Shown here: positions 30,766 through 58,438 of the stretch, one piece after another
How positions within the stretch are numbered: position 1 is the stretch's first letter
Layout of the letters: every line of letters starts with the position of its first letter
From: Paragordius varius
Lineage: Eukaryota > Animalia > Nematomorpha
Length of the DNA: 64,000 bases
Direction of reading: 5' to 3'
Assembly: GCA_964247055.1 (NCBI GenBank)
Contig: OZ176050.1
Location: 9,486,001 to 9,550,000, forward strand
The notes under the pieces: model-generated
Databases searched by the model: none
What the model saw: only the letters and a program-made list of their open reading frames with translations
Told to the model about the DNA's origin: nothing
Position numbers and translations under genes: made by a program

Positions 30766-31599
30766 TCAAATATGCCTTGTATTACCAAATATCATGCCCC
30801 GTTGACTAGCACCTTTGTTTGTCCCATATTGGAGAGATAGGACAGTATCTCCTGCTTTCATTTGTTCACGCGTCCATTCTCGTTTTTCTCCGCGTGATTC
30901 TTTCACCCCAAACCCTTTTAGACCTGAAATGTCATGAGCCTAACAACACCACAACAAAATTCAATATCAAGAATAGTTTAAAAAAATTCTAGCGAAAAAA
31001 TGAATATTTACAATACATTTTCTCATATGGTTTAACTATAAATTTCCTATAAAAAATATATTTATCTTACCTTGCGACCCAAAGAAAGCAGGCAACATAG
31101 AACCCCATATAAATTGGTACCTTCGACCAATTCTGTCGTTTGAAACGTTTCTTGATCTGGAACACCCAAATTTTTTGCAACTTTAAGGAAGGAATCAATA
31201 TTGGCCATATAATGAAACGGGGAGCCTTCTTCGACTATTTTGGGAATAGCGTTTGGGCTTAATATATTAGCTAGCCTAAGTTAAAAAATACATAGACTAA
31301 TTATTAAAATTTATTATATAAATCAAAAAATACTATGATTTAATTATATTATTTAAGATTTAAAAAGCTAAATGACTCAAATATTTACTTGCATAAAATA
31401 ACTCCGTCTTTTAAAGTATTATGAAATGCCTCTTTTTCACCAGACGTATTAAAATCTTCGTCAATCATTTCGGAAACCCATAACAATACATCACTAGCCA
31501 ACGTATCGTCATATTTACTTTGTAACTAACGTTATTTTGTATAATTACTTTTTTGTCCTCTTCAGCGGCCAAGCCAGATTTAGAAGGCCGATTCGCCAT
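30766..31599 (-). CDS. Transgelin/myophilin/MP20-like calponin-homology protein (188 aa)
   Basis: Exons (minus) 31599-31549, 31525-31389, 31275-31071, 30939-30766; introns 23, 113, 131 nt. MANRPSKSGLAAE..., CH domain (TLKDGVILCKLAN, FQTTELVEG), C-terminal calponin repeat LQYGTNKGASQRGMIFGNTRHI. Confidence 0.92.
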
Positions 31600-32542
31600 A
31601 GAATTTGAATTTAAATTTTGAATTAAGTATGCCTTGACGAGTGTGCAAAAAGCATGTGTTAAGTCAATTTTATCGGAATGTATTTTGTGAAAGGCATAAT
31701 TGGATTTTAGGGAAAAGATATATAAGCAATGATTATTAACGTTTGTAAAATTTATAGATAGGATTTTAACGATTATAATTTGCGCAAAATCGGGCTATAT
31801 AAAAAAATTTCTGATAAATTATATATATTCTGATAAATATAAATATTATAATTATTGTGCTTTTGGTAAGTGATATATATATTGGTAGAAAAATATATCA
31901 AGATTATCATGTTGCTTGTGGTTTTGGAATGATTTAAGAAAGCTATTTACTTTGTGCTAAGTTCTTCATATCAAAAAAATCAAATAAAAATATTATACTG
32001 CTTTTATTTCAAGTTTATAATATTTTTGATATTTTTGGAATGAAGCATGGCTTACACCAAAAATATTTTATCAAAAAAATGTGCGCAAATTTAGCCATTT
32101 TTTATATGGAGCACTTACCATAAAAGTGTAAAAAATTTTTTTAAATCACTTCTAGGGTCAAAACCAAAAGCACAGTGATAATCCTGATTTACCCTATATA
32201 TATATATATATATATATCTTCAGAATATGTTTTGACTGTGTATACGAGAAAATGTCAAAATCCGCTCACAGTTTATTTAAATTTTTAGGTCAAAGCAAAA
32301 TTTTTCAATCCGAAAAATTAATATATACATATACATATTTTTTAAATTTAATTAGTAGGCTTCAAAATCTCAAATTTTTGGATCCCTCCAAAATGGGCTA
32401 GTTATCTTAAAATAAACGCTACAATTCCGTAATTTGATAGAAAAAATTTTATATATGATAGATAAAGTTATAAAAATTTAATTATTATAAAGTTTTGTTA
32501 ACGTCTTTTTGAAAATATTTTGCATGATGCAAAAGTTATTAA

Positions 32543-33095
32543 CACTTCGATTCAAATTGGGGTATCTAAATACCCCAGACTAAATTTAAATTAAAATTTT
32601 TAAAAAACTACTGAAGGAAACGGTCCCAATTTAAATTTATGCTTCTATCCTGATAAATGTTATATAAATATGCCAAAATATCTTGATAAAATTTTGTTTT
32701 GAAAAACGTTCCATCTCAAACTACTTCGACGCCATTTTTATTTTAAAAATTTTTTTCAAAATATCGTCTTCATGTAATTTTAAGGGTAAAACTAAAGCTT
32801 ATTTTTTATATAAATTACATCTAACATTGATAGAAATAGAAAAAGCGGTTTGTTTTGTATTATTTTTTAATTTTGCAATTTGACACATGTCAGGTTGACT
32901 AAATTTTTACCATTAAATTTTAGCTCAAAATAAGTAATATCAAGTATTTTTGAATAATTTTTTTTATATATTTCGGTTTATTAATGTTATATAAGTGCAA
33001 AATTTTGCCATGGTTTCGATTGCTTTCCTACTTTTTAAAGTATTTGATTTTAAACAGGCCTGGGGTATCCAACTACCCCAATCTGAATCGAAGGA
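32543..33095 (+). mobile_element. piggyBac-like MITE (553 bp)
   Basis: TTAA|CACTTCGATTCAAATTGGGGTATCTAAATACCCCAG at the left; inverted CCTGGGGTATCCAACTACCCCAATCTGAATCGAAGGA|CTAA at the right. The same ends occur at 22.5-23.1 kb and 40.5-42.2 kb. Confidence 0.7.
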
Positions 33096-33526
33096 CTAAA
33101 ATGAGTGTGTTGTATCCAAGTGTTAAAACGCTTTTAAATACACTTTTCCATATAATTTGACACATTTCTATTATCTCAGAATAGTTAATAATTTGTTCAT
33201 TGTCAAATTACTTTTTTTGTGAAATACCTATTTTTGATTAAACTAAAATCTAATAACGAATTTTTTTAAGCGGAATTTTGAGGTATTACCATTAAAATTT
33301 ATATAAACATTTTTTATATATTTTAACTGTTTAAAGACAGTTAACACTATGCGAAATACAATAAAATACGGCATTGAGAGTTTATTAAAAATTAATAAAT
33401 TTTAATAGCAAAATATCGCGATCTATGTGTTTATTTTTGATTTCCATTAAAGAGGTAAATTTCACAATTCGGAAACCACGTTTAAATATAATAAGTTGTT
33501 TTGCTTTATATATATATAAAGTAAAT

Positions 33527-35415
33527 GGGGGGCTATTTGAAAAAAGGGACAATAAAATGATCCATATATGTGGATTATTTCGAAACATTATTTTATAGCT
33601 ATGATCTCATAAGATTTTCAAAAGGGTGCATTCATACAAATATATTGTTTACTAATGTAAAGGCCCCAAATTGACGGCTAACGGAAAAAACCGCTATTAT
33701 TTTCACCTTTTATGGGTAATATTAAAGGCCTTATGCAATTTGTATGGCTTCTTAAGTTTTTTGTAAATTAGCTCCAAAGACACGCCATTTTTATATGTCG
33801 TCTCAGTTTTAAACCGGTAGACCCCTACCCAAAGGTCTATATGGAAAAAGCGCTAAGTTAAAATTTTACCTTTTTAGGGAAAATATTTTCAATCATCTTT
33901 GAGACCATCGTCTCATAGGTTATTCGAAAAAATACCTCAACACTAAATAATCGTTATGGCGTATGTCTAGGGCATAAAAGCCCCAAATTAACGGCTTAAG
34001 GCCTGACCTTAATTTTTATCTAGTTACGGGTAATATTTCGACCTCTAAATGAGCTCATATGGCATATGTTTTATATTAGTTCCAAAATAAAATATAGTGG
34101 CAGTTTTTGGCGGGTAGCTTCTTACCCAAAGGCAGGTAAAAAAGCGCCGAGCAAAATTTTTGTCTTTATATGGGGAATATCCGAAATTATAATGACCATA
34201 TGTTCCTATAGGTTCTTGGAAATATTGCTTTGTTCTATGGCGGCGAATTTTTCAGGGCTAAAACATTTCTTAGCGACTTATTGAAATAACCCCCTATACT
34301 AAAATATTTGTTTTTTAAGGGGTAATAAATATTTTAGACCCTTATTGAATTCACATAGTCTCATAAGTTATCTGAAACTTGCCTCCAAAGGCATGCTGTA
34401 CCGATATAGTCAACATTTAGGCCGCCAGCTCCCTTACCCAAAGCCTATTTAACCGCTAATCTAAAAAATCCGCTCGCCTTAAGTTTTTGCCTTTTAACGG
34501 GTAACATTTTAGGCTATATAAAACTTATATGGCCTGATTTCTGAAAATTAACTTCTAAACAACGCAATTTTGATATGGTGACGCAGTTTTAGTCGGGTAG
34601 CTCCCTACCCAGAAGCCAATAAAAAAAGACGTTCGATAATATTTTTTGCCTTTATATGGGAATACCTGGAATCATGATTGATTCTATACGCCTCATTAGT
34701 TTTTGGAAAAATTTCTTCATAATTAAAAATTATTCTATGCTGGTGCATTTTTCAGGGCAAGGGACTAAATAACGGAAACAGCACGATCTAATTTTTGCCT
34801 TGTTGTGGGTAATACTTTAAGCAACTATTGAACTCATATAGCCTGATAGGTTTTTTGATATTTAGGCCCAACACTCTATTTCGATAGGACGTGTCAGTTT
34901 TCAGTGGTTATTCCCCTACCCAGCAGCTATCCTCAAAGAAACGCTTGACTAAAATTTTTGCCTTTTAACAGTGAATACCTGGCTGAATTTTTACGGTTTA
35001 ATACTTTGGGCAAAAAATAGATATAAAAAATTATTTTTGTGGACATATTTTTTTTGAAAAAAAGTGGCATTTTACGGGGGGAGCGGGTAAAAAAGGGCCT
35101 AAATTAAAAAAGCGAGCCGACTATGTTCGGCGCAATTGAAAAAAAGTAAATAAAATCATATTTGAAATCGAATGGTCCAACTCGTTTTCCGGTAAAGTCT
35201 CAAAGACACGATTTTTGTGGCCTTCTGTTTTCGAAAAAAACCGTCTTTTACACGGGGTGGGTCCCAACTAGGGGCCTAATTTTAAAAAGGGGCCAAGCTA
35301 TTGTCGGGGCATTCATTAATGATTATGTATTTTCGACATTTGGATTCGAATGGGTCTACCGGTTTTCCGGAAATAGATCACAAAGCCAGCATTTTCCATT
35401 TTTATAATATATAGA
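33527..35415 (-). mobile_element. Non-autonomous Helitron, copy C, 3'-truncated at the G tract
   Basis: 5' end A|TCTATATATTATAAAAATGG at 35415; collinear with copy A; similarity stops at GGGGGGCTATTTG (33527), hairpins and CTAG absent. Confidence 0.85.
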
Positions 35416-36369
35416 TTATGATATATTTTAGCAAACCTTTTTTGAAATGATGCATTTAGCCTATACCAAAATAATTTTATCGCCAAAATGTGCCCAAGTT
35501 ATTTTTGATATGGAGCAGTTAACACAAAAGCGGTATTTCTTATGACTTCTAAGGCTCGAAAACCAAGAGCCCCACGAGAACCCTGATATAATTATCTATC
35601 ATAACATATATAATTCAATTTTTGTGCACATCTACACATCTTTTTATTACTGTAGAATGAGAGCTTAAAGACTCTTTATGAGGCCCATTTGAAATTGGAA
35701 TTTTTTGATCATTTAAAATCCGCCAAGGGTGATCAAGCCTTTTTTAATTCATATCAGCTTTGCCTCAACCCATGTAAATAGGATCCCACATTTTGAGCCA
35801 AAAATTGTTAGGGCCATACAGTTTTAATAATGAATTTTTTTCATTTTAAGGATTGCTTCAAATTTAAATGAGCCTTTTAATTAAATACTGGTTAGCCCCA
35901 CCCTCTTATGGAAATGGGTTTTTTGAATAATTATTGGCTTTAGCGAATTCCGGAAAATGTGAAGCCTTTTAAAATTTAATAAGATATTTTTTAATTGTTT
36001 CAGAAATTCGCAGAGTTATTAATAAGCATTTTAGTTCAGCGCCCCATCACCCGTGTGAACATCGGAGTTTTTTTCTAAAAAAGTCAGTTTTTGGAAAACG
36101 AGTAAGCCGAATCGATTTCAAAAGTGGAATTTCGGCCTTTATTAATGCGCCGTTATGTATTTGTCCTCGATTTAACCATACACAACTCGTGTAAATACGA
36201 GTTTTCGAATAGTGTCCAATTCGAGATCAATATCTTTTTATTTTTATAAATGCACCGAGGGACTGAGTCACTGCTGTAGAGAAATGTTGGTGAGCATGAT
36301 GAGTATCAAGTCATGTTTTCTCCAATTTCTAAAAAATTCATGATAATCAATACGCAGTCAATTTAATTA

Positions 36370-36630
36370 TTTTAACCAGTTTACTAAACATACGGCTTTC
36401 ACATTAAATTCATCCTTAATCCGCCATTCGACGTTGCTCTTTGTATTTGTCGGCGGGCAAGAGCATCAGTTTTAATTGAGTTTTCACCAATAGCTGAAAA
36501 CTTAACGATAATCACACAGTGAATACCCTATTGATTTTAACCAGCTTATTAAACATAGAGCTACATAAAATTCATCCTTAATTACTCATTGAATGCTGCT
36601 CCTTATACTGAGGCGGATACGAGTATTAAG
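36370..36630. repeat. Diverged direct repeat, ~165-bp period, 2 units
   Basis: TTTTAACCAG..TAAACAT....AAATTCATCCTTAAT at 36370 and 36535. Confidence 0.65.
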
Positions 36631-36789
36631 TCCCAAATACAGAATTTGCTCTTAAACATTAGTAATAAACAAAACTAATTTTTGTTTAAATAATAATTTG
36701 AATTCTCGTAAAATTTATTGAACTATATTCGAGATATTCGATACATGGTAGTATCTTCAAAGAAATTAAGTTTGCTAAAATCACGTCGA

Positions 36790-36900
36790 GAACTTAAAAA
36801 CGAATGCACCGTATATCACAAGGAATGTAATGATTGTCCATCGCACTACATCGGACAATCCAAATAACTATTACCAAAATACGGGATACACCTTCGCCCC
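36790..36900 (+). mobile_element. Penelope-like GIY-YIG endonuclease relic
   Basis: Translation ELKNECTVYHKECNDCPSHYIGQSK* matches the Penelope motif VY.I.C..C...YIGQT. Confidence 0.65.
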
Positions 36901-38280
36901 AGCATCCATTATAAAACAAGCCAAGTTATCTTGAAGGCTTGTTACACCCATTCAAATAAGGAAACTTATTGACAGAAGAGAAGAAAGATTAGATTTAAAT
37001 AACGTAACCAAAGCGTTTCAAAAAGTAACAAATTATTTCAAAATATTTACAAATCTATGTAAAAAAAAGAGAAAGAAAGCCACCTGGACATTGACACATT
37101 TTATATTTTTCGTCATATTCTATAATTATTTATATTTTGTATTAATTATATTTTATCAATATTATTTCTTGTTATTTCATTTTTCCATTTAAAAAGAAAC
37201 TATTATGTATCAAAAATTTTGCATATAGTTAATTTTGATAAATTTTACGAGAATTGAATATATTATTAACATAAAATATTGGTTCTCGTTGACAATTTAA
37301 CTAATTTTTTTGTTTTATCAAATTTAACCGAATAAACTTATTTTATATTATTAATTTCACCATTGACTTTCAAGCTTTCTTATAATTAAATGCACTCTAT
37401 GTATCATAATCTTATCACCATTTCCGCGAGATGCAAAGATTTTATTTTATAATTTAATGTTTACAAAGATTATCTTTACAAAATAAATATATATTGCGAA
37501 AGTAGTTTTGGATATTAATAAAATAATCTTTACGGTGAGTGTAAAATTAAGGAACGAGTTTTGAAAGATTTTTAACAACTATGCCAATGGGTCATAAATC
37601 ATAATTTCTTTTTTTCTAAGCAAACAAATGGCAAATTGCCCAGTGTTAATAAAATTTCAATACAAACTTAAATCCTTTTCAAAATTAAAAATACAATTGA
37701 AAAAAATAATAGAGCACGAACAAATATTTTATCGTAATTTTATGTGACCCAAAAACATATTATTTTTAGGGGTATATATAAAATGTTAAAGCGTAATTTT
37801 GGGTAACATAATTGTAGGATTGATTTGTAATATATTTTAACTAAATCAAATGCATTCAAAACAATTAATGAGTTGAAATATGTCAAATTTTACCAATTTT
37901 CCATTGCCGTAAAGCATATAAAACTAATGTTATACAAATTTATATCATATGTTTACGCATAAATATGATACAAAAAAATAAAAATATCAAATCATTAAAA
38001 AATTTATTATCACAAAAAGATAATCATATAAATATATGGATTATAATTACTTTAAATGACTATAATTTGGTTAATAATTGCATACCTTTTAGTGTGTGAG
38101 CATATATTATATAAATAAACAGTTTTCATTGGAGTAAATATAAATAATTATTCAAGGTTTTTTTAATAAGGAGATACTATGAAAAATATTGTTTCTACCC
38201 AAAAGTATTATAAGGTAATACCAATGTTTACTTAACCCATTTGAAATAATTTTTGTCGTTAGTAATATTTTTAAAGCACA

Positions 38281-40211
<1,931 letters not shown>

Positions 40212-40465
40212 CTAATGAATGTATATACTAAATAATTATAGATTGCTAAGGTTTTATTAATTTTTGCATAACTTTCCAATCACTAAATTTTGGACATTTT
40301 CTCTGGATAACACTTTTTCCTATGATATGTTTATCTTTTATAAAAACAACAATTAAATATCATTTAAAAAACTATATATTTAACATTTTTGATTATATTT
40401 TCGGATGTTTTGTACCTCTCAGAGCATAAACTTAATAACACTTGGATTCAACATATTCATTTTAG

Positions 40466-42222
40466 TTCTTCGATTCATATTGGGGTAATTGGATACCCCA
40501 GGCCTTTGTAAAACAAATAATCTAAATAGACCTTTTGTTTTAAAGTTCTATCGCTTATTTTATATTTATTTATGCCTAATTAACTAAATACAACAGGAAA
40601 ATTACATTTTAATTCAAGTCTCTACATGCTTCAGACAATCGGTTTACAAATATCTATTATTTATATTTAGCATCGCCATAACAGAACGAAAAAATCTTTA
40701 AATATAAGTTTTTCTAATTTATAGCCTTATAAAGACATATACTTGAATATCCTTATATAAGATATTGGACAGTTATTGAATCTTGAAAAGCAACTATAAA
40801 ATTAGTCTTATAATTTTTGTAGACTTGCTTAAATTGAAAACATTCCACGTACTTTCTGAATATTTAGGCTTACTATAAAATAGTATAAATATCATGAAAG
40901 AAACAGAATCATATACACCAAGATGGTTTTGTCAACAGGTCATCAAAATTTATATAAATCTTGATCTCCCAGAATAATTCTGAATAATTTTATATTTGAT
41001 GCTTTATATCTAATCATGTATTTTTATTTATTCTACGTCAAAATAAATCAAAACTTGCTTTTTGCCTTCTAGAAGTAAATCGTTTATTATTAGGTAAGTG
41101 AAACTTACCGCGGCCCGGGCTCTATTTTAATGCCAATTATTAGAATTTTTTTTGTGATTGTTTCAAAAATAATGCCAATTTCTCATTTTTAAACCCTTCA
41201 AAATTTATCTGGTTTAATAGGTGTTAAATTCGATCCAAATATTTAAATTTATAAAGTGATCTTGTTTTGTCTCAGCTTGCATCAAGGCACATTAAAATAA
41301 CAATTATTTTTAATGAGATTTGTCAAGAAGGATAATCACAACGGATTCCGATTTAGCATTGATCGATAAATATAGTGTAAAAATATCTTAATTCCAAATA
41401 ATTTATTTAGATTATTTTCATAGTTTGTGCAAACAATTTAAGAGGATCGCAATATACAGATTTTTTGTGAACAGATTTTCTATGAAAATTGCACCTTGTA
41501 GAATATATAAGTATATATATCTTTTTGGCATATTAATATTATTGCAAACCGTTATAAAGCCGAAAAAGATTATTTATAAGAACATGTATGATTTGCGCAA
41601 GCCCATAGCAATCAAGATACCTAAATTTGCATATAGATAATAATATACCTATCAAAGTCTTCTATGTTCAAATCTATTTTTCCGATTTTCATAATCAAAT
41701 TTTTTACGTCATAGGTTATGATAGAATTAAATGTTGTAATTGGGTGGTGGATAATTGATTTGAGCCCGGGGATAAAACGACTTATATTGGATTGCTAATT
41801 TTTCCATTATATTATAACTAAATAAAATAATTTTATACCTGACTTTGAAGATGAGGAGTCATCCACATTATAATCTCTGCTACTATCAAAATTATCTGAA
41901 TAATCTTCCATAACAACAAAATAAATGCTTCGTAACGGAAAACACTTTAAATGATATGTTTACAGAAGGTGGGATTGTGTATACTTTAAAAATAATATGT
42001 ATTCTGGTAAAAAAATTCAAAAATAATTCTGGCCCCAACCGATTCGAGATGAGATTTTTTTTCAAAACTAAATTTCATTAAGTAATTTTGATTTAATTAT
42101 ATATTTTTTATAAAGATGGAAACATAAATTTAAATTAGGACCATTCTATTGGGTAGTTTTTTTAAAAACACTAATTTGAAAAAGGTCTGGGGTATTTAGA
42201 TACCCCAATTTAAATCGAAGTG
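40466..42222 (-). mobile_element. piggyBac-like element (~1.76 kb) with decayed transposase-like remnants
   Basis: Same asymmetric TIR pair as 32543-33095, in reverse, with the right end abutting TTAA (42223-42226). Minus-strand fragments GILIAMGLRK, PIKPDKF and KPSWCI*FCFFHDIYTIL weakly resemble PGBD motifs; acidic N-terminus MEDYSDNFDSS. Confidence 0.55.
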
Positions 42223-43077
42223 TTAATCAACTGTTTTAAAAAGATATTTGGACAATTTATTTGAACCTTGATCTTTTATAGTAAAAATCTTATATTTACC
42301 CTCTTTTACTTATTGAACCAATGATATAGATTTAAAACCCGACTAAGATAAACACTGATTCTGATATCAATAAACATTAAAAATAGATAAAATTCAAAAA
42401 CTTTATACGACACAATTATTTTTATGCTGTTTTAGTGAAAAAAAGTTTCAATAAAGCGGCAAAAAGTCAGCATTAAGACAATATTTAATTTTTTTATAAA
42501 AAATATCCACCCAAAAAACTAAATGGATATTAAATTTGGTTAAATATCTTTAAAAATAAAATGGCCCCATAAAGTAATGAAGTGTTGCATTTGGGTTTTA
42601 TCCAAACTTTAGAGTTTATATGTCACAAAATAATGAGAATAATAAAATATTATAGGGAATGAGCATTAAAATCAATACCTTTATTAATATATTTTAGGAA
42701 ATTCAAACCATAAAAATATTCTAAAAAAATTCATACATATAGTTTATGTAATGAAACCTTTTATCCTTTTATAAAAATAATCATGTCTACTATTGATATA
42801 TGGTTTTTTAGAAATAGATTGCTTAAAAAGTGCTATTCATATATTTTTGCTTTAATTTGGTCCATAAGAATATACTGTATCAAGGTGTATCAAGAAAAGG
42901 GTGTAGCAGACCCACGTCGCCACTGTCCACAAAAGACGTCCCTTGCTGTCCTTCCATACACCAGTCAATGGTAGTTTAGTGACAGCCGTCTAGTTGCGTC
43001 AGGGGTGGGTAACTGTAATAATTTAACAATATATATTTTGTCGGATTTAACCATATGCTTCGTGTCACTGCAAAATT

Positions 43078-43796
43078 ATGGTAAACGTGCATTTCTTGCT
43101 CTCCGTGGTCTTTGCCACCTTACCATTTGCACATTCCTTTTTCAAACATATTGATGCCAATGAAGAATATACTATGTTTTTGGATCTACATCAAAACCAA
43201 AAATTTGACCTAATATATGAAGTTGTAGATGGTGGCTTTTTAGATATTGATGTCAAGGTTTTAAATTTTTAAATATTTAATGTATCCATTATACAATATT
43301 TATCCTTATTTATTATATACTGTAGGTTACAGATCCTGCTAATAGGACTCTATATCAAGCATCAAGAGAGTCAAATAACAAGTTAAAGTTTTCAGCCAAT
43401 ATGGATGGAATGTATTACCTAACTTTCAGTAATAAAATGTCAACCATGACCCCTAAAATTGTTTTATTTAACTTTGAATCGGAAGAAACTCGAAATTTAA
43501 CACGAGAGTCAGATGGTTTAATTATAATTAATTTTAGATGAAAAACATCGCAAACTTGCTGATATGTTGCAAGAACTTGGATTAAATCTTGAAAATGTCA
43601 AACGGGATCAAGACTTTATGGAGGCCAGGGATAAAATTCACAGATCAAGTTTAAAAATATTAATAATGTAGTTAATGAAAATACTAATTCAAGGGTAGTT
43701 ATGTGGTCCCTTTTTGAATCATTGGTACTTATCGCTATGACAGTTGGTCAAGTGTATTACCTTAAAAGATTTTTTGAAGTGCGCCGAGTTATATAA
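43078..43796 (+). CDS. TMED2: p24/TMED2 cargo receptor (201 aa)
   Basis: Exons 43078-43257, 43326-43515, 43538-43648, 43672-43796; introns 68, 22, 23 nt. [44 protein letters not shown]; intron positions equal those of human TMED2. Confidence 0.95.
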
Positions 43797-45549: not shown

Positions 45550-46650
45550 ATAATTTAAAGGTTTGAGTGGTGGTGCTAAAAAATGTCTAAATTTGTCGAC
45601 TAGTGTAATTGATAGGGGCTGATTACCAATCTTTATTTTCTAGTTTAAGATATATAAACTTTTATTTTTGAATCATTCTTTGGAAATTTTTTAAACTTTG
45701 ATGATAAATATTTAGCAATTGGGTAACGACGAGAGTATATAACACAACGGTTTCTTTGATTTTTTTTCTTTGTTTTGCTCATTAAGGGTTTCTTAGGAAT
45801 TCTTATATTAGTGGTTTCATGATGATTATTTTTAATTTAATTTTTACTGTTTGTTTATATTTTTAATTGTATCTCCTGATGATGCCTATGGCGAAAATTT
45901 GAAAACCAATAAAACGGTATCTTATGACGATATTCACATTACAATTAATTCACTATGGTTAATATTGTGGATTGCTTTCTATATGTATGTCACGAGCTTA
46001 AAATGTATTGTTGCAAATTCCAGCTACGCAAGACCCGACTCTGACAAGACTACTTGCCAATTATTGTGGGACAATGACATCCTGGGAAGCAATGTTGGAG
46101 TGGCTGATATTTGAGTAGGGCTCGTTCCCAATCTTCGACATCTCTTTTGATAGGAGAAACTTAGCTCAAGCGAGGTCAACGGCCACTTATCTTGGGTTAG
46201 TGTCCAGTTGAGGGTACAGCTGAATCATGGTCGAATGAAGGGGTAACGTTGACACTTGTGATGTCGAATATCACCAAAATTGGGCTCCTTAAAGACCCCC
46301 TTTTTACCAATGATAAGATCTTGACTCTACATTTTACTTGACATAGACCTTTGACATTACTTTAAGGAGTAAGGACCATTACTGTTTGTACAGTTATTTA
46401 AAATCAAATATTGCTTTTACATACCTAACACGGTAATTCGTTTAATATATATATGGCTTTTTAACCATGCTAAGTTGCATTAACACACCTAACATAAAGC
46501 ATTCATTTATGTGTGTGGATAGTAACATCAAACTTAAACTATGAGTTTTCCCGCTCTGAAGTCTGATGCATAACGGATGAGTATGGAATGTCTTGACGGC
46601 ACCGACGACCGTCCGGTTCTACACCCTTTACTTGTTTATATTTTGTTTTT
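45550..46650. repeat. Unclassified dispersed repeat, copy 2 (cf. 23570-24740)
   Basis: Collinear shared blocks, same orientation as copy 1. Confidence 0.7.
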
Positions 46651-46729
46651 GAAATATGTTTACATTGGTTATACCTAATAATGTTTTAATATTCATATAT
46701 CTTTTAATATGCTATACATATGATAGATA

Positions 46730-47725
46730 CTCCTTACTCAGCATCTATCATCAAAGAAACGCTTGACTAAAATTTTTGCCTTTTAACAGGCAATACGAAA
46801 AATCTTTCTCGAATTTTTACAGTCTCATACCGTGGGCAAAAAAATACAATCAAAAAAATATTTTTGTGGACTTTGTTTTTTTTGAAAAAAATGGCATTTT
46901 ACGGGGGGAGCGGGTAAAAAGAGGGCCTAAATCAAAAAAGTGACTCGACTATGTTCGGCGCAATCGAAAATAAGTAAACAAAAATCATATTTGAAATTGA
47001 ATGATCGAACACGTTCTCCAAAAAATTGACTTAACCCATTTTTCACACGGGGTGGGCCCAAACTGGGGACCTAATTCCAAAAAAGGGCGAAGCTATTGTC
47101 GGGGCATTCATTAATGATTAAATTTTTTCGATGTTTGGATTTGAATGGCTTCACCGGTTTTCCGGAAACAGATCACAAAGTTATATGAAAAATCAGTTTT
47201 TAGCGGGTAGCTCCTTACCCTGCAGCTATCATCAAATAAACGGTGGACTAAAATTTTTGCCTTTTAATAGTAAATACGTGGAATCTTTATTGAATTTTTA
47301 CGGTTTCATACCTAGGGCGAAAAATCGATTTAAAAAATTATTTTTGTGGACTTTGTTTTTTGAAAAAAAATGGCATTTTACGGGGGGAGCGGGTAAAAAG
47401 AGGGCCTAAATCAAAAAAGTGACTCGACTATGTTCGGCGCAATCGAAAATAAGTAAACAAAAATCATATTTGAAATTGAATGGTCCAACACGTTCTCCGG
47501 AAAATTGTCTCAAAAACACGATTTTGTGGACTTCTGTTTTTAAAAAAAACTCGTTTTTCATAGGGGTGGGCCCGAACTGGGGGCCTATTTCAAAAAAAGG
47601 GCGAAGCTATTGTCGGGACATTTATTAATGATTATATTTTTTCGATATTTGGATTTGATTGGGTCTACCGGTTTTCCTGTACCAGATCACAAAGCCAGCA
47701 TTTTCTATATTTATAAATATATAGA
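46730..47725 (-). mobile_element. Helitron copy D: two head-to-tail copies of the 5'-subterminal ~450-550 bp
   Basis: 5' end A|TCTATATATTTATAAATATAG at 47725. Units ~46730-47180 and ~47181-47725 both carry GCATTTTACGGGGGGAGCGGGTAAAAAGAGGGCCTAAATCAAAAAAGTGACTCGACTATG. Confidence 0.8.
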
Positions 47726-47799
47726 TTTCAAAAACAATAATTAATAAATTAGGTACAATAACAACCAAAAATAAAAATGAGATACAAGAATGAATAAAG

Positions 47800-50560
47800 A
47801 CTTTAAATCTATATCGGAACATTCGAAATTGGCTCTTAGAATGTAACAATGGCAATTAAGCAATGGCTGGTTATAGATACGGTGAGATTAGATTTAAACA
47901 TATGCTGTCTACAAGAAACTCGATATAAAAATGCAGGTATAAAACACTGATGGATATTCATTACTATACCAAGGTGGGAACAAAGGACAATCTGGCGTCG
48001 CCATAATGATGAAAGATACCCATAGCCAAAACGTAATCACCGTGACCCGTCACAGCGATAGGATTATTCAAGCTAGAATGATATAAACAAGTGATCCTCG
48101 GTGTTATTTCCGTATATGCACCCCAAGATAAATGCAAACTGGATTCGTGGGATCAACTCCACCAAATATGTTCCAATATACTCAAAACAGACTGTTTAAT
48201 GATTGGAGAAGATCTAAACGCACATGTTGGAAGCAGCGAAGGCTTCTCTGTTATACATGGAGGATACAACTTTGATAACCGGGACAAAGAAGGAGAAAAT
48301 GTTTTAGAATTTTGTGCAGCTCAGCGACTACAATTAGCAAAACTCAATATCTGGTAAATACAACCACTTATAATGCGGAAACACAGCATAAAGTAACATC
48401 ATTTTTTAATAATAGGCCTTCTAATCATAATACCAAACCTAGACTTAATATACATAAGCTTAAAAAACCTGAGATAATGAAAAAATTCAAAAATTCGCTT
48501 GACTTAAACATTGTTAATCTAAACGTTGAAGACTCCTGGCACAGTCTAACAAGCAATGCGATTTAAAGTGTAGAAAAATTGTGTGGTAAAAGAAAGAGCA
48601 AAGCCCAAAAGAAATGGTGGAGGGACGATTCAATTAAGCCACTACTTAAAGAAAAGGCGCGTTTGTATAAAAAATGAAAGAAATCGAAAAGAGAATACGA
48701 CAAAACTGAGTATTACAAATACAACAAAAAGGTACAAAAGGAAATAAATTAATTGATGATAAAGAGGCTAAAGATACTGCCGATAAATTGGACAAAGAAA
48801 TCCAAATTATGAAAATTTTCAATCATATGAAACTTTACAAAACAAAAAAGCTATACCAACGATTAATTGTATAAAGATAATAATAATAGTTTACAAATAC
48901 AACCAGAATTAATTAAATCCATATGGCAAAAATATATGGAACAAAATCTAAACAACCATTTAACACCCATCCTAAATTCTGTCAGAGATCCCTGTTGGGT
49001 CCATTAAGGATATTTACAATACAAAAAATCGAAATTGCCTTAATCAAATGAAATCAAACAAGGCTTCGGGCCCTAGTGAACTGTTTTGATATCATAAAAT
49101 TAATATCCAATATTTCCATGCTTTTAACAAATTTTAACAAAATAATGGTTGAAATGAAAATACCCACAGACTGGGAAAAAAGCATTAAATTTCCCTTCAA
49201 AAATAAAGAGGATATTCTTAATTGCTCCTCATACAGGCCCTTAAAACTTCTTGAACATGGGTTAAAATTTTTGAAATGTGCCTCAAACGTATCGCCGAGC
49301 TCATATCAATTGATCCAATGCAATTAAAAGAACAATCGATCCAATTTTCCTACTCAGACAATTACAAGATAAATACCGAACAAAAGGTCTTAAAATATTC
49401 CTCCTTTTTGTCGATTTAAAAAAGGCTTACGACTCAGTACCTAGAGCACTAATAATAAAATCACTGAGCTACAACAACTTAGATGAATATACCATTAAAT
49501 TAATTATGTTGATCTACTCTACACCTACTCAATCAGTTGTGTTCTTACACCTGCTGGGAATTCAAAGTATTTTAGTATTAATACCGGGATGCATCAGGGG
49601 TCGGTCTTAAGCCCGTTTCTTTTCATATCTGTATTAGACTACATTACAAAAGACATTAGAGAAGGCTTACCGTATGAAATTCTCTAGGCAGTCTATCTTA
49701 TAATTAGTGCAGAAACTATTTCAATACTCGAAAATAAATATCTAATGTGGTTAAAACAATTACAAAAAACAGTCTTAGGATCAATACCAATATTCTAATC
49801 ACACTGAGCAAATATCCATGCCCAAAGTGGATCACTGAGGTAAAACTAAACTCACTTTGTTGTACAAAATGCAGGAATTAAGTCCATAAAAAATGATCTT
49901 ATATAAAAGTAAAATTAATTAATAATTTTATCTGCACACCATGTGCTTTATCGATACCACTGCCAATATCTAATCCGCGTACTTTAAACCTCAATGGAAT
50001 TATAAATTGTAACATCTTTTCCATATCTTGGCGATTGTATACCATCTGGTGGTTCTTTAAAAAATGCCATTTCTCATAGAATCAGACAGGGATGGGCCAA
50101 ATTTAATAAAAATATATTTTAACTAATAAAAATATTAAATTAAATCATAAGATAAAGATTTACAAAATGGGACTAAGACCAGCTATGACATACGCTACAG
50201 AAACCTGGGCCATTAGAGCAAACAGACATAAATAGACATACTAGAGCTGAAAACATGCTAAATCTGCAACAATAATCTTGATAATAACATAAAAGAAGTA
50301 GAACTAATATCTCTGTTAATTCAGCGCAACCGATTGCGTTATTACGTGCATTTTCAACATATGAATTCCCATAACTGGGTACAAATACAACTAAACATAC
50401 CCGGCCCATAGAGAAAAGGTTGCCCTAAACCCACATGGTACAAACAGCTGACCCAAGATCTCTTACAATTCAATATTGAACACGAACAAGTCTTTGATAG
50501 AACATTGTTACAAAGGTTAGTGCATGGTAACCCCAGATACCCTGGGAACGGAGAGATAAA
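47800..50560 (+). pseudogene. Near full-length decayed RTE-clade LINE (APE endonuclease + RT)
   Basis: APE: CLQETRYK, YQGGNKGQSGVAIMMK, VISVYAPQ, GEDLNAHVG, EGENVLEFC. RT: SSYRPLKLLEH, FVDLKKAYDSVPR, GMHQGSVLSPFLF. C-terminal RPAMTYATETWA, RLRYYVH. Many stops and frameshifts. Confidence 0.85.
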
Positions 50561-50979
50561 ATTGGAATTAAATTTTAACCATGATAATTATATACGTATA
50601 AACTAGAAATTTTTGAAAAATGTATGCCAAAAATATACAATTATTTATTTAGTGTTTATACATGCATAAAAATTCCGGTATCATCTAAAGATTCCAATCA
50701 TATTCTTAATCTATAAATGGAAATATTATTGATAACACTTAATACAAATAAATTAGAATCAAAAAGCACAATTATTATCAGATAAAGATATGTAAATTAG
50801 TGTATTTTCTAATATCTATCCATTGATCTTACGTCTATATTTTTAAAAAATCCAAAAAATAAACTATTATAGTTTATAGACTTTTTATTAATTATAAATC
50901 AAAATTTAAACGGCTTTTTATCATAATGCAAAATCGAACAAAAAATAATAATTCTTATTTAAACCTTATAATATAGGCC

Positions 50980-50982
<3 letters not shown>

Positions 50983-51012
<30 letters not shown>
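50983..51012. repeat. (AT)15 microsatellite
   Basis: Direct reading. Confidence 0.95.
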
Positions 51013-51015
<3 letters not shown>

Positions 51016-52090
51016 GGTCAATAAAACTTAATTTAATTATGTAATTGAGTAACTTGAAAGTTTACTAAGCATTATAAATATTAAAAGAACAAATTTTAAC
51101 AAGTTTAATCTGCACCAAGCCTGAAAAAATTATAATAATTATTTTCTTGTATTCACAGAATATTTTAAGTTTAAAAAATCATTTTTTAAATATATAAAAA
51201 ATATGAATAATTTTAAACCTTAAAAAACAAATAATTTATTTTAAGTTGAATTTGAATTGTTGGGTGAATTTGAAATGTAAATTATAAATAAACTACAATA
51301 ATGGCAAAAAAGTTGAACTAGCTATATTTTATCTATTCTTTACCCATTGTATTAATATTAAAAATCATTGAAAAATCATTTTATAATTTTAAGCCGTATA
51401 CATAATAATTGCCTTGCATTTCATATTTTAATTTTTCATTATAAGCATGGTTGTCAACTATTCAAATCCATATCGAAAAACATGAGTGTATTTAGATTAT
51501 GTTAATGAAAATGAAATTTACCTCATTGTTAGTAGTAAATATAATTAAAAATTTATAAAAATCTTAACCTTAGATAATGATTTAAAATATGATACAGTAG
51601 TAAATACAGTATGCACATTTGTGTTAGGCAATTCACATTATTTTAGGTCAATTGGCAACACAGTAATATATGGGTAAAATAACAAAATATTGAAATTAAA
51701 CAATTCCCTATCTTACCCCATTAATTTGTTTATAAGTAAGGATAAATGTTTTATAACACACGCCACTGTTTTATCAATTAACCAACAATAATGTGAATAT
51801 GCCAGCATAAATCTGCACACTGTATATGCTAGTTTTTTTACATTTAGAGTATATTGCAATATGATTGGCTTAAATTTAGTGCATATAAAAATATATATTT
51901 TTCGCTTTTTTCCCCTTTTCAACCAAATTAAGCTATCTAATATCAAATGAAAAACTAGCGATGTATAATTACTCAACTGTATATACTTTAAACATGGTAT
52001 ATATTTAATTCAAATAAGTTAAAGCAATACTGTTTCTATGGTTGCGGATGGCTTTTGTATGAAAGTACGGAATCCATAGGGAGCCTATCA

Positions 52091-52096
<6 letters not shown>

Positions 52097-52152
<56 letters not shown>
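52097..52152. repeat. (AT)28 microsatellite
   Basis: Direct reading. Confidence 0.95.
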
Positions 52153-52155
<3 letters not shown>

Positions 52156-52695
52156 TTACTATACATAAATCTAAATAAGTAATTTTGTGGGTTTAGAATT
52201 ATAAAAATAATTAATGGTTTACGAGGTGAAGTACAGACCCATATTTGGATGATTTTAAAACATAAACCACCAACCCAACCTAAAATGATTAACTTTACTT
52301 ATAAAAGATCAAAAATGTTTTATGGCGTTTAATGTTGCTTCTTGATTAACAAAACTACTTATAAATTTCATAAGCAATTAGAAATATTTGCAATGAAGTT
52401 AGGGAGGTTTAAATGATGACTATCCACCTATTTATTTAATATCATTTTAAAACGACCCTCTTCGATTTATTTATATTAATACATTGTTTGAGGTTATTTT
52501 TTAAAATGGATGCGTTTAACGGGTTCAAACTTAATAAACCGCGGGGAATTAAATTTTAAACATTTATATAGTAATTAATTAATCCGAAAAAATGCATAAT
52601 GAATGCCGTTGATAAATAACATTAGCTGTAAGGTATTGTGAATTGCTCTATAATCAGAGGTAAAATTGTTGATTTTATTAATTTTTATATTAATA

Positions 52696-53280
52696 CTAGC
52701 GTAAATCTCGTGCTGCTACGCAGCCCGAGGAAGTCCTTCGGACTTCTGGGGGGGGGGGGGGGGGGGGGGGGGCTATTTGAAAGGGACAATAAAATGATCC
52801 ACATATGTGAATTATTTCGAAACATTATTTAATGATCTCATAGGAATTTCAAAACGGTGCATTCATACAAATATATTGTTTACTTGGGCGAAAAATAGAT
52901 TCAAAAAATTATTTTTGTGGGCTTTTTTTGAAAAAAATTACGTGGGGAGCGGGTAGGGCCTAAATTAAAAAAGCGAGACGACTATGTTCGGAGCAATCTA
53001 AAATAACTAAACAAAAATCATATTTAAAATTGAATGGTTTAACACGTTCTCCCGAAAATTGTCTCAAAGACACGATTTTTGTGGACTTGTGTTTTCAAAA
53101 AGAAACCGTTTTTTACACGGGGTGGGCCCGAACTGGGGGCCTAATTCAAAAAAGGGCAAAGCTATTTTCCGGGCATTCATTAATGATTATATTTTTTCGA
53201 TTTTTGGATTTGAATGCGTCTACCTGTTTTCCGGTACCAGATCCCAAAGCCAGCATTTTCCATTTTTATAAATGTATAGA
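52696..53280 (-). mobile_element. Non-autonomous Helitron, copy E (585 bp, internally deleted, both termini intact)
   Basis: A|TCTATACATTTATAAAAATGG at 53280 to CTAG|T at 52699-52696; two perfect hairpins (52712-52724, 52730-52746) and a G25 tract (52748-52772); lacks most internal tandem units. Confidence 0.88.
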
Positions 53281-53761
53281 TGTAATTTTTAGCATTTTAT
53301 AACTATTTGAAAAAGTAAAAATATAGGAGCGTATAATGTATGTATTGGGTAATAATTTTATGGATGATTATAATTTATGCAAACATTCGATTTTTGCAGA
53401 TTAATCTGTAAAGTGAAAAATATAAAGCAATTGCCCCCTTTTCGGGGGGTGGAACCATTTACATCATTACTCAAAACGACTATCTTTATAATTAAATATA
53501 TCTAAAACAGGGATTGAAACTGAAACCATTTCGTAAAAACTAGTACTATGGTTTTTTGTATATTATGTTTTTTGTCATTTATGCCAATAAAAAATATGGA
53601 ACTTGATTTAAAAAAAATTGGTCTTAAACTTGTTAACAAAAGTGAACCATAAATTTTCATAATATTAGTTTGCCATCGTGCCTCTCTTAATTTTAGATGG
53701 CATATAAAACGATAGATATCTTGAGAGGCATTAAATTATGAAAATGCTAAATATTTTAAAG

Positions 53762-55532
53762 CAGTGGTACTAAAACCGCGGCCCGCGGGCCGCATGCGGC
53801 CCTAAAGGTGCTTTAAAATTGCCCTATGACCATATTGATACTTAAATTATTTTTTTTATTGATGTGTTTTTATAATACACATAAACGAATTTTCGCTTAT
53901 TTTAATAATAATTTTTTTCTTTAATTTAATTTTAGTATTTTGATTTTTACCCAATTCAAAATCTAGAAAAATTTTCCTACATTAAAATGATTTCAAAATT
54001 TTGGTACCTTTGTTTCTGTGTTTTATTTTTTTTCCATTTTGAATTTTTATTGCATTCCTTTTATTTAAGCAAGCCTGCATATACATATTCTTTTCATTGC
54101 TACCCTACATCATTTTTTACAAATCCTTCCCATAAAATATTTTTCAAATTAATATCATTAAATTTCGACCTGTTTTTTTATAGCATAACTCAAATTATAT
54201 TCCTATTTTTTTGAAAAAAATTACATATTTAAACATAATAAAATCAAAGGATGACATCTAATGCTAAAAAACGTAATTTATCCGATGAATATCGCTCCTT
54301 TCAAAAAGAATAGGAAGAAAAATTTATTGTTGTTTTAAATAAAAATGTTATTATCTGCCTTATATGTAAGGATAACATAATTATAAAAAAATACAATATT
54401 AAAAGACATTTTACAATCCCTCATTCTCATATATTCTTCGTTTATTATGTTTTCGTTGCAAAATTTCACAGAGATACATTGAAATGTTAAACTAATAGTG
54501 CTAATAGCAGTTTTTCAGAGCCAAAAATATATTTAGACATCAATGGGTCGAGCACATGTTGAATCAGAAAGTTTAAATTTTTTAATTTGCCTCATGATTT
54601 ACTTTTATGGAATTTATCGAATAAAAAGGGCAACCTTTTTTAGATATTCTTTTATTAGTTGGGAATCAGTAAACGGTTTCATATTTTTTCCTAAGTATCA
54701 AATTTTATATAAAACTTAACAGAAAGTTTGACGAGGAAATTAATAGTGACAAATGGTAAGTTTTATTAGCCTACCTTTGCGATACTTATAAACTTAATAT
54801 TTTTAATACAAGTCTTTAAGGGAGCAAAATAATGACCAAGAAAAATTAATAAAATATAAACAAGATTTTATCAATAAAACACTCCTATATTTTCCAACAC
54901 TTAAAACGATTCATGAAGAAAATATGGATTTTACCGCGGAGAAAAATTTAATAATAGACAATCTAACATTTTTCTATGAGATGGAATTTAGAGTTTAAGA
55001 ATTAAATTAAAAATTGCTTAAACTTATTGAAAATCCATGACATATGGATATATTCAATATAAGCAACTTGAGCATTTCGGTTTTGATCAGGCGCATATCA
55101 TTGAAGAATTCGTAGAATCGTAGAGAAGAGTATGTAGAGTTTTGGCAAGATGTGCCAAATAATAATAAGAATAAAAAAACGAGCTCAAGTTATCCTAACT
55201 GTTTTTCCCTCAACTTAGGCGTGTGAGACGGCATATTCAAAATAAAGTACGTCAAGAATACAAGCAGAAATCGTTTAACCGATGAAAATTATCGGTTAAT
55301 ATCAAAATAAATGTTATCAAAATATTTTAATTTTTTAAACTAAATGGTGCGATACGAGTTTTTAGCTGGATTTACATGCGATCCGCAAAAAATTCATTGT
55401 GCTGATTTAAAGTATTAATGTGTGCATATGTGTCAAATCGCTATGTAATATATGCCATTATAAGGTTCATGGCCCTCGAAAATTAAATATATTTTATTTG
55501 GCCCTTCAAATTTTTTTTGGTGAATACCACTG
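53762..55532 (+). mobile_element. Internally deleted hAT Buster/SPIN-type transposon (1771 bp) with transposase remnants
   Basis: TIRs CAGTGGTACT and (revcomp) CAGTGGTATT; perfect 8-bp TSD TTTTAAAG. N-terminal relic from 54251 MTSNAKKRNLSDEYRSFQKE*..ICLICK..KKYNIKRHF..H; hAT dimerisation relic ~55200-55290 FPST*ACETAYSK..YVKNTSRNRLTDEN. Confidence 0.88.
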
Positions 55533-55883
55533 TTTTAAAGTGTGAATAACAAAAAAAGAGACATTAATAAATTAAAAAATATTAACATAAGTATATTTAT
55601 ATTATTAATATAAAGGTGAAACCATATCTTAATGTTAGATAAATCTGAAACATATATAATTTTATGAAATGGGCACACAATGCTTACACCTTTAATTAGA
55701 AAAATATCAAAAAATACTTTTATTTAATGATATTTTCCTAAACAATAAATTATAACCATAAATAAAAAAATATGCAAATAATCAATTAAATGCATGCGTA
55801 TTGTAATTTTCATCTCCAACGACCATATAAAATTGGTAAAGGCATTATCGGATTTTATTCCGTGATCATTGAGTTAAAAAAAT

Positions 55884-56777
55884 TTATATATGTACTTTAT
55901 TTGAAATCTCATTAATTTGTTTTTGTTGTTGCCAATCATTGTCGAATTTGCCGACAGCTTCTTTATCAATGATTGGATCCAAGACACATATTAATTGGCT
56001 AATTTTTTGCAAATATCGTTTCAATTCATCCCGATACAAAGATGTGAAGATCATTTTAGATTGATCTGTTTTTTGAGAATCTTCCGATAAATCATTTGAT
56101 AACATTTCAGAATATCTATTATATATATATAATAAATACTTGACCTATTATTTCGATAATCATTGATAATTTTAATCAAAGCAGCCTCGAACAATATAAA
56201 AATTTTAGAACGATTCCAATACCACGGTATTGTTTTTAACTTAGATGGGTTTTTAGAGTTGTACCCATAGTATGCAATAATATTTACGTAGTTAAAAACA
56301 AAACTAAAAGTATCGAATATGTTTTTGGGATTAAATGCTAGAGATAAAGCCTAAAAACACTTAAAAATTGAGAAAACTTGGGGAAATTTGGATATAAACG
56401 GTAAAACATATTCGATCCGATTTAAAATAATATCATTTAAATCAGTGAGTTCTGATGAATTTTCGAGTGAGTTAATCAATTCTTTATCAGACAACTCTTC
56501 ATAAAATTTTAGAAGTTCAAAACCATGTTTATAAAAAATTCCTTGTAAAGACGGTGGCAAATGTAAATCTTTAACACCTAACATATCAAATAATATTACC
56601 CTTAACCAAAGATAGCCGAGTCCATCCATATTTTTTTACATAAGGTAGTGAAACTTCTAAAATTTCGTTTCTAAGATCTAATTCTATTTGGTTCCTTTGC
56701 CCTGATTTAGAACTGTATTTACAAATTTTAATAGCTATAGAATTTAATTTTAGGGCACGCTTTATAAACACATGCAT
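55884..56777 (-). CDS. COQ9: Ubiquinone biosynthesis protein COQ9-like, mitochondrial
   Basis: Exons (minus) 56777-56600, 56577-56378, 56350-56145, 56115-55884; introns 22, 27, 29 nt. Basic transit peptide; EILEVSLPYVKKYGWT..L..G, NRIEYVLPFISKFPQ|ALSL..P.N, WYWNR align to COQ9. The 3' end is less certain. Confidence 0.75.
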
Positions 56778-56809
56778 AATTGAGTGAACACCTACATATT
56801 ACAATCCAT

Positions 56810-58438
56810 ATGGCAGAAGCACCTACTTCACGACCACTCACCGCTTATTTTTTATTTTTACACAAAAATAGGGATAAAACAGCACAAGAAATGCCAAATA
56901 TTGGAAGTCGTCAAAGAATAAAATATTTAGCCGAAAAATGGACTTCATTGAGTAATGCTGAAAAGCAAGTAACTGTGTTTTAATATTTATAATAGGCTTA
57001 TCGCTTAGAGGCACAAGAAATGCATAAAAAATATTTGGCAAATAAGGATTATTCTAGTGATAACAAAAAATATTATATGAGCATAGGTCCTAGGAAAAAG
57101 GTAAAAGCTCCTATTCAGTCCAATAAAGTAAAAACGGAGGAAACACCCAAGTGTGATACTAAAAATTATTTTCCCGTTTATTCAGCAGATTTTCTCAAAT
57201 TTAATAAAGGTATTTATTTTTAGACTTATATTTTTAGGCAGAGATCAATTATTGATTAAACTGCAAAAAGAATATACGGAATTAGCCCACGAGCGCAATC
57301 TATTATCAAAATCTTATGAAGATAAACAAAAAATCTATAAAGAATTATCTATGAATTTTTTAAAAATTCAAGAGCAACGAAAACAGCTTATTCCTAACAT
57401 AAACCATTTAAAACAACAAATTATTAAGGCATTCAAAGAAAATCAAATATCTTTTGGAGGTAATTATTATTCAAATCACCCGCAACTTGTTTTTTTGACT
57501 GATTTTTTGATATTTCATAAGCGATTTTAACCAATAAGATTTGCGTTTAGCTTTTCTAATTGAATGTTTGCGTTAAAAACATATGAAAGTTTAGCCTTAA
57601 TTACTATTCCGGTGTAATAAATTACCATTATTTTAATCATTTTTATTTTTTTTATAGGGGTGCTTAAAAACATGCTAAAAACAAATTTTATGAATTAGTG
57701 AGGCACATTATTACGGTTTTTGCAAAACAGATTAAAATCACGTAAAAACCATTACATTTGCTTTGGCTTCTAAGTTATAAGAAAATATCGCTTGAATATA
57801 GAATCTTATATAAAAAATTGGATATTTAACCATGGTAAACCATGAAAATTTATAAAAAATATTAACCTTTTATTTTAAAAGACAATGTCAAAAAAGCCAC
57901 AATAAACATTGCAAAAATATGTATTGTATGTTATTTTTCTGGAAAAATATTTTTTGGATTAAGATTATTATAACTTTGAAGGGTGGAGAATCAACTCAAA
58001 AATGAAAAAATATATTTATTGGAATATTTACAAACATAGCTACTATTTAGTTAAAGTTCATGTTATTATGTATCTTTGAAATATTTCGATGCCGCTGTAA
58101 CTTGTTTATATTCCATTTCATATGTACTTTTATTATTATATTTTCATTTAACACAATATCATATGTAAATAAACTTTTTGATGGTTTAATTACCAATTAT
58201 TTAAAAGGCCTTTTTATTTATAACCCAAATTTCAAGTACTTTAATAACTCCTAATATTATAGATTTGGAAATTAGGGATATAACTCCAGAAAATTTGGAA
58301 AAATACCTTAAAACCCTAATTACCAAAATGAATGGCAATGAAGATATTGGTGACGGTGAGTTAATCAACCTTAATTCTGATGCATGTGATCCCAATCTTG
58401 AAAAGACATTATTTAATTTTTTTGATAAAAATAAATGA
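56810..58438 (+). CDS. HMG20A/B (BRAF35)-like HMG-box protein (256 aa)
   Basis: Exons 56810-56968, 56996-57209, 57238-57459, 58263-58438; introns 27, 28, 803 nt. HMG box APTSRPLTAYFLF..KWTSLSNAEKQ|AY; FPVYSADFLKFNK|GRD.. followed by a coiled coil and ITPENLEKYL match HMG20 PIFTEEFL..K|ARE..; intron positions match HMG20. Confidence 0.75.

Follow-up and report, generated by a model that had tools for sequence, protein, structure and literature searches.

Predicted introns of 22–29 nucleotides alongside ordinary introns in the genome of the horsehair worm Paragordius varius

Five genes and eleven very short segments

The DNA considered here is a 64,000-nucleotide (nt) stretch of the genome of the horsehair worm Paragordius varius (assembly GCA_964247055.1, contig OZ176050.1, positions 9,486,001–9,550,000 of the forward strand), which we call the window and in whose numbering all coordinates below are given; its GC content is 23–32%. 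Five genes within it, encoding a transgelin-like protein, GALE, TMED2, a COQ9-like protein and an HMG-box (HMG20-like) protein, are interrupted by eleven segments that an earlier note on this DNA had read as spliceosomal introns of 22–29 nt. When the segments were extracted from the window, all eleven lay at the positions and on the strands given for them, with lengths of 23, 28, 22, 24, 22, 23, 22, 27, 29, 27 and 28 nt, and every one of them began with GT and ended with TAG. The accompanying claim, that their removal restores the reading frames, was confirmed as well: in all five genes, excision joins the open frames into a continuous protein. We refer to these segments as micro-introns.

The gene richest in comparative evidence is GALE (38284–40172, minus strand), whose eight exons encode an intact product of 385 amino acids and are separated by introns of 28, 22, 24, 230, 201, 81 and 145 nt; this model, like those of the other genes, was completed by trying every GT–AG pair. 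Its three micro-introns come first: intron 1 (40033–40060; 28 nt, phase 1), intron 2 (39892–39913; 22 nt, phase 0), which falls between K77 and H78, and intron 3 (39754–39777; 24 nt, phase 0), which would contribute an in-frame TAA if retained. For intron 6 a 52-nt alternative was rejected because it breaks the frame, and 81 nt is the correct length. Exon 6 (38740–38890, minus strand) carries a lineage-specific low-complexity insert of ~40 residues rich in N, H, S and G.

The other four genes are shorter. TMED2 (43078–43796, plus strand) has four exons, a product of 201 amino acids and introns of 68, 22 and 23 nt, the second (43516–43537) and third (43649–43671) being micro-introns in phase 1. 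The transgelin-like gene (30766–31599, minus strand) has introns of 23, 113 and ~131 nt, of which the first (31526–31548; GT..TAG, phase 0) shifts the frame to a stop if retained. All three introns of the four-exon COQ9-like gene (55884–56777, minus strand) are micro-introns: intron 1 (56578–56599; 22 nt, phase 1), intron 2 (56351–56377; 27 nt, phase 0), whose terminal TAG would be read in frame upon retention, and intron 3 (56116–56144; 29 nt, phase 2). The HMG-box gene (56810–57530, plus strand) has two, one of 27 nt in phase 0 (56969–56995), with an in-frame TAA if retained, and one of 28 nt in phase 1 (57210–57237). The COQ9-like and HMG-box genes stand head to head with start codons ~30 nt apart (56777–56810), which implies an extremely short promoter region common to both.

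Boundaries and reading frames both point to introns. T precedes 29.5% of the AG dinucleotides in the window, so that TAG at all eleven 3' ends would arise by chance with a probability of ~1.5e-6. The 5' ends are less informative: the third base is A in five, T in five and C in one, and no consensus extends further into the intron (n = 11). Since stops make up 7.2% of codons in the window, the exons beside the micro-introns, stop-free for 36–96 codons, are unlikely to be open by chance. Keeping a micro-intron yields a premature stop in all eleven cases, at most ten codons away in nine of them, and each of the three whose length is divisible by three carries an in-frame stop of its own. Among the six possible frames, the predicted one had the highest codon-usage score in each of the 14 exons tested, a result that is partly circular, as the score was trained on other exons of the window and stops penalise the rival frames.

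An unbiased scan of the window for GT..TAG segments of 22–29 nt flanked by at least 35 stop-free codons on either side gives a measure of the background. It found 524 segments of this kind and length, of which 31 passed the flank criterion, all eleven micro-introns among them. We rejected the other 20 as introns: most are multiples of three inside long open reading frames, or lie in junk or repeat frames, and ten that were translated gave nothing gene-like.

Homology across the junctions and the state of the DNA

Ungapped homology spans the junction left by nine of the eleven micro-introns, namely all three of GALE, both of TMED2, the first of the HMG-box gene, the first two of the COQ9-like gene and that of the transgelin-like gene. 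In GALE, exon 1 matches the GDP_Man_Dehyd profile to position ~34 and exon 3 from ~74, and exon 2 with its split codon supplies 40 amino acids for the 39 positions between; against the Epimerase profile (Pfam), exon 3 reaches position ~100 and exon 4 resumes at 101. The exons of TMED2 likewise cover the EMP24_GP25L profile up to ~108, then 111–146, then 148–182, with split codons filling the gaps, position 147 being the codon split by intron 3. Exon 1 of the HMG-box gene ends at position 48 of the 69 in the HMG_box profile, and a 37-residue peptide across the junction covers positions 33–65 without a gap. In the transgelin-like gene, exon 1 encodes 17 amino acids beginning MANR, and exon 2 aligns with human transgelin-2 from the EKQYD motif onwards and with positions 4–39 of the CH domain; in the native numbering of transgelin-2, 17 residues precede the EKQYD region, a number that exon 1 matches only once the 23 nt have been excised.

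For the COQ9-like gene the relationship emerges only from the joined sequence. A 48-residue peptide across junction 1 had human COQ9 as its sole match in the PDB (177,635 sequences), ungapped over residues 103–147 (E 0.017–0.035), and a 44-residue peptide across junction 2 again matched human COQ9 alone, ungapped over residues 182–220 (E 0.03–0.07). Searched singly, exons 1, 2 and 3 gave no COQ9 match in the PDB; exon 1 has a weak, sub-threshold match to COQ9_N in Pfam, and exons 2 and 3 on their own found no COQ9 in Pfam, the PDB, the ESM Atlas or a library of 1.84 billion proteins. Two micro-introns are predicted from open frames and codon usage: COQ9-like intron 3 links exons that are stop-free for 68 and 76 codons, with the predicted frame ranked first of six, and HMG-box intron 2 joins open frames of 71 and 96 codons, both likewise ranked first.

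Several of these sites also hold introns in other animals. GALE exon 4, used as the query of an exon-level search, led to three long animal contigs, each of which has exactly three introns in this part of GALE, of ~130 to 1,070 nt. At the site of the 22-nt intron 2 the three contigs carry introns of 130–522 nt, and at that of the 24-nt intron 3 introns of ~325–1,070 nt, identical in both cases in position and phase. Their counterpart of intron 1 is likewise in phase 1 and is displaced by one codon, within a loop that varies by insertions and deletions. The next GALE intron, past the ADK motif, is also common to them. In TMED2, the 68-nt intron 1 lies at the same exact site as a ~590-nt intron of another animal contig, which in addition has a phase-1 donor at the place equivalent to intron 2, inside a loop of variable length. 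Because ordinary introns of other animals occupy their positions, the three micro-introns of GALE and intron 2 of TMED2 appear to be old introns that have shrunk. Exon-sized searches with GALE and TMED2 returned proteins of at most 78% identity, of which none was labelled hairworm, the length filter of these searches dropping full-length annotated proteins.

Public sequencing runs bear on what the segments are in the DNA itself. In four DNA runs from two studies, some of which may derive from the assembled sample, contigs bridge the micro-introns of GALE and TMED2, five segments in all, with zero gaps, and a joined form without any of the five was found in none of them. These bridging contigs speak against both an assembly error and removal at the level of DNA. 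The runs also reveal two diverged haplotypes. Of the variants listed for GALE, 20 lie in introns, two of them single-nucleotide polymorphisms (SNPs) inside the 28-nt intron 1; the conserved exons hold eight synonymous variants and one non-synonymous when read in the spliced frame, and three more non-synonymous variants all fall in the low-complexity insert of exon 6. Codon 38, which intron 1 splits, varies from GCT to GCC, a synonymous change. Purifying selection thus acts on the spliced frame of GALE.

These observations make two explanations very hard to sustain. The first, by which frameshifting insertions have struck pseudogenes in decay, or errors of assembly or sequencing have created the segments, could draw on the strong divergence of the COQ9-like and HMG-box genes; yet contigs from the four runs hold the five segments they cover without any gap, all eleven segments share GT..TAG ends and a length of 22–29 nt and interrupt five genes that are otherwise intact, three of them occupy ancestral intron positions, and the synonymous excess in GALE is that of a gene under constraint. 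We regard it as highly improbable. The second holds that the segments are removed from DNA rather than RNA, as internal eliminated sequences (IES) of the ciliate type or by programmed DNA elimination. Programmed DNA elimination occurs in some nematodes, and the segments are similar in size to the shortest eliminated sequences of ciliates. Against this stand the gapless bridging contigs and the missing joined form, the GT..AG ends in place of TA..TA, and positions at which other animals have spliceosomal introns, and we give this explanation next to no credence.

What the evidence strongly suggests is that the eleven segments are genuine GT–AG spliceosomal introns, most of them shrunk to ~22–29 nt and most likely removed by the usual U2-type spliceosome. 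Some points weigh against this conclusion. The public runs that contain the stretch are all DNA-like (the four runs have even depth across intergenic DNA, enormous depth over repeats and no splice-like joints), and it is from DNA that we infer removal from RNA; no run recorded as RNA holds the stretch, and small runs of the same species guessed to be RNA contained none of the sampled words. The COQ9 junction matches are marginal (E 0.02–0.07), COQ9-like exon 3 is without a relative among 1.84 billion representative proteins, no homologue was found for the junction 3 peptide, and COQ9-like intron 3 and HMG-box intron 2 lack homology support. GALE intron 1 is shifted by one codon relative to the introns of the comparator animal contigs. 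Finally, motifs of the TAA, TGA or TNA type can be seen by eye ~4–12 nt before the 3' end of each micro-intron, and in sequence of 83% AT a candidate branch site among them is indistinguishable from chance occurrences.

The same runs provide several observations on the GALE–TMED2 region. Across GALE intron 5 (38941–39200) the haplotypes show 20 differences over 260 positions (~8%), and heterozygosity is therefore very high. High-copy repeats between the two genes (40396–42255 and 42814–42999) have a summed contig depth 20 to 1,000 times that of the neighbouring single-copy DNA in the four runs, with peaks of 200 to 1,000 times, and many loose contig ends fall at 42185–42227. Contigs from three runs record a structural variant (42865–43010) immediately 5' of the TMED2 start codon, in which 144 nt are replaced by 14 other letters.

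Long introns in the same genes

In animals such as nematodes and flies, ordinary minimal introns measure ~45–90 nt. The 68-nt intron of TMED2 and the 81-nt intron of GALE fit this class, compared with which the micro-introns are two to three times shorter. In the rebuilt models of GALE, TMED2, the transgelin-like, COQ9-like and HMG-box genes and ESS2, to which our statements on intron size refer, the longer introns measure 68 nt (TMED2), 81, 145, 201 and 230 nt (GALE), 113 and ~131 nt (transgelin-like) and 157 nt and ~2.1 kb (ESS2). The earlier note had counted 16 introns of 68–3,197 nt in the window and none of 30–67 nt; the gap is borne out in the rebuilt models, which take in part of the 16 long introns counted, at lengths of up to ~2.1 kb. 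Micro-introns lead in GALE and in the transgelin-like gene; since those of TMED2 follow its 68-nt intron, a bias towards the 5' end is not strict.

The note had gone on to propose two splicing modes, implying a modified spliceosome able to assemble on ~22 nt. In the strong form of this proposal, one machinery would be dedicated to introns of that size and a conventional spliceosome would deal with the long ones. The clear division of lengths, eleven introns at 22–29 nt, none at 30–67 nt and the remainder at least 68 nt, speaks for such a proposal, as does the final exon base before the micro-introns (G in six, A in four, C in one). In other respects the two classes are alike: AT content is 83% in the micro-introns and 75–87% in long introns of the same genes, compared with 63% in GALE exons 1–5, the 5' site is weak in both, and TAG also ends five of seven long introns. 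Because the classes share these features, a second mode is unnecessary, and a modified spliceosome remains conjectural. The window contains no spliceosome component, a scan of it with Rfam giving no match, and a size gap can equally come from deletion to a minimum combined with repeat insertions. Moreover, myxozoans with introns of 22–27 nt have a conventional U2 small nuclear RNA (snRNA) and U2AF (Hadjez et al., 2026; PMC13644364). We therefore consider two modes unlikely.

On the reading we prefer, a single U2-type spliceosome would cut out both the micro-introns and the longer introns, from 68 nt to kilobases, of the same genes. It would recognise the 5' end by GT alone and the 3' end by TAG, and might use as its branch site the A-rich stretch a few bases upstream of the TAG. 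Most micro-introns would have shrunk towards a physical minimum of ~22–29 nt at sites where other animals keep ordinary introns. The two size classes are then best understood as an evolutionary outcome, some introns having been whittled down by deletion until they reached the minimum and others lengthened by inserted repeats, and do not necessarily reflect two mechanisms.

A further possibility concerns how well such introns are spliced. They might be real and yet inefficiently removed, as in microsporidia, with a large proportion of transcripts retaining them and passing to nonsense-mediated decay as a regulatory cost or tool. Every retained form meets an early stop, including those of the three introns whose lengths are multiples of three, and the median splicing efficiency of ~25% cited for very short microsporidian introns in PMC13644364 offers a precedent. 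Set against this, housekeeping genes here contain several micro-introns each, so that losses would multiply. We think such inefficiency rather unlikely; it is in any case a refinement of the explanation by spliceosomal micro-introns and not a replacement for it.

Long introns can also be compared with those of a second horsehair worm. The long exon of ESS2 finds by far its best match in Gordionus sp. m RMFG-2023 (39% identity, E 5e-27; runner-up E 1e-12), as befits a nematomorph other than Gordionus montsenyensis, and the order and orientation of wnt (minus), ESS2 (plus) and the transgelin-like gene (minus), which occupy 7820–31599 of the window, are conserved on Gordionus chromosome OX940784.2. 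Intron positions shared by the two ESS2 genes hold 907 and 1,613 nt in Gordionus, versus 157 nt and ~2.1 kb here. Gordionus ESS2 has an additional intron of 4.8 kb that is absent from this genome, and the transgelin-like gene spans more than 9 kb in Gordionus compared with 0.8 kb here. In the window, ESS2 contains an assembly gap of 200 Ns (26649–26848) between near-copies of one exon (26269–26592 and 26864–27232); this doubling (26269–27232) probably stems from a misjoin or from haplotypes left uncollapsed.

One of the ordinary introns, GALE intron 6 (38656–38736, minus strand, 81 nt), has a curious opening. It encodes GFSLLNIL in frame, resembling both GISVLEL, with which the next GALE exon opens, and GYSVL, a motif conserved in other GALEs, and nucleotide identity between the intron and the exon edge is weak (18 of 47). 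One of the three animal contigs used for comparison has no intron at this site and has one 16 codons downstream. The intron may have been gained, or may have slid, through duplication of the exon edge.

Comparison with known short introns

From the letters of the window it is well supported that ultrashort and normal introns occur together in an animal genome that is not compact; the kind of intron is known, and the genomic setting is unexpected. This upholds the central claim of the earlier note, that ultrashort and ordinary or kilobase introns coexist, often within one gene and with a size gap between them, in a repeat-rich animal genome. Its warning that standard gene finders would break these genes is supported as well, the minimum intron length in usual settings being one that would truncate or split them. 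Both size classes can be compared here within a single transcript. Missed micro-introns could also lower BUSCO scores, such as the 71.6% completeness reported for Gordionus, and may inflate estimates of gene loss in the phylum. The Gordionus genome measures 288 Mb, 64% of it repeats (10.1101/2023.06.26.546503). Our search of the literature, which did not take in Cunha et al. (2023), found none linking Nematomorpha with short introns, and introns are never mentioned in the Gordionus genome paper or in a comparative hairworm preprint.

Whether the class extends beyond this locus is a more speculative matter. We raise it as a tentative possibility that horsehair worms have a discrete, genome-wide class of 20–30-nt introns, of which the eleven would be a sample. 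This would be a third, independent animal origin of the trait and its first occurrence in a genome that is large and rich in transposons, uncoupled from compaction. If so, the class may depend on lineage-specific changes in how the spliceosome first assembles, for example an altered reading of the 5' site or strict recognition of TAG, and part of the 'missing' conserved genes of hairworms would be an annotation artefact. Hairworms are macroscopic, and micro-introns close to introns of hundreds of nucleotides in one gene would show that the spliceosome can attain its lower size limit without genome streamlining.

Such a class would add to a short list. The lower limit usually assumed for animal introns is ~30 nt, and a survey of 51 animal genomes (Hadjez et al., 2026; PMC13644364) recovered introns below 30 bp from myxobolids and from Dicyema japonicum alone. 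Both groups are tiny parasites with reduced genomes, to whose compaction the trait was tied; their U2 and U2AF are conventional, and further cases of ultrashort introns were predicted (PMC13644364). The earlier note had named ciliates, nucleomorphs, microsporidia and dicyemids as the main bearers of such introns, mostly in compact genomes; its list omits the myxobolid myxozoans, which have the shortest published animal introns (PMC13644364). A recurrent class below 30 nt, as in Myxobolidae and Dicyema, is found here too, with eleven introns in five genes.

Outside animals, the micro-introns can be set beside those of ciliates. Ciliate introns are nearly all tiny, ~25 nt in Paramecium and 15–16 nt in Stentor, in a unicellular host. 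The micro-introns resemble them in their narrow, near-minimal lengths, their richness in AT and the premature stops that follow retention, multiples of three included; they differ in belonging to a multicellular animal, with long introns present and a different genome architecture. Of the features of a ciliate IES, neither a DNA form without the segment, among the five segments covered in four DNA runs, nor TA boundaries was found here.

Dicyema japonicum is closer, being, like the hairworm, a parasitic animal with reduced splice-site motifs, and most of its introns are below 30 bp (PMC6736024, PMC13644364). It is a spiralian, however, and no relative of hairworms, with a small, reduced genome in which nearly all introns are short and no separate long class exists (PMC6736024).

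The nearest likeness is to the myxobolids Henneguya, Thelohanellus and Myxobolus, whose median introns of 22–27 bp fall in the same range of lengths as those described here (PMC13644364). They share with the hairworm GT–AG ends, a 5' site reduced to approximately GT plus A or T, conserved intron positions flanked by conserved exons, a parasitic host organism and an AT-rich genome. The 3' signal differs: that of myxozoans is reported to be AG alone (PMC13644364), and all eleven micro-introns here end in TAG. Myxobolid genomes are compact (20–200 Mb), with relatively few transposons and with short introns beside short ones, whereas this genome is repeat-rich and its micro-introns occur in genes whose other introns reach 230 nt. 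Lastly, myxobolids belong to Cnidaria, and the genome described here is that of an ecdysozoan, a member of neither Myxozoa nor Dicyemida.

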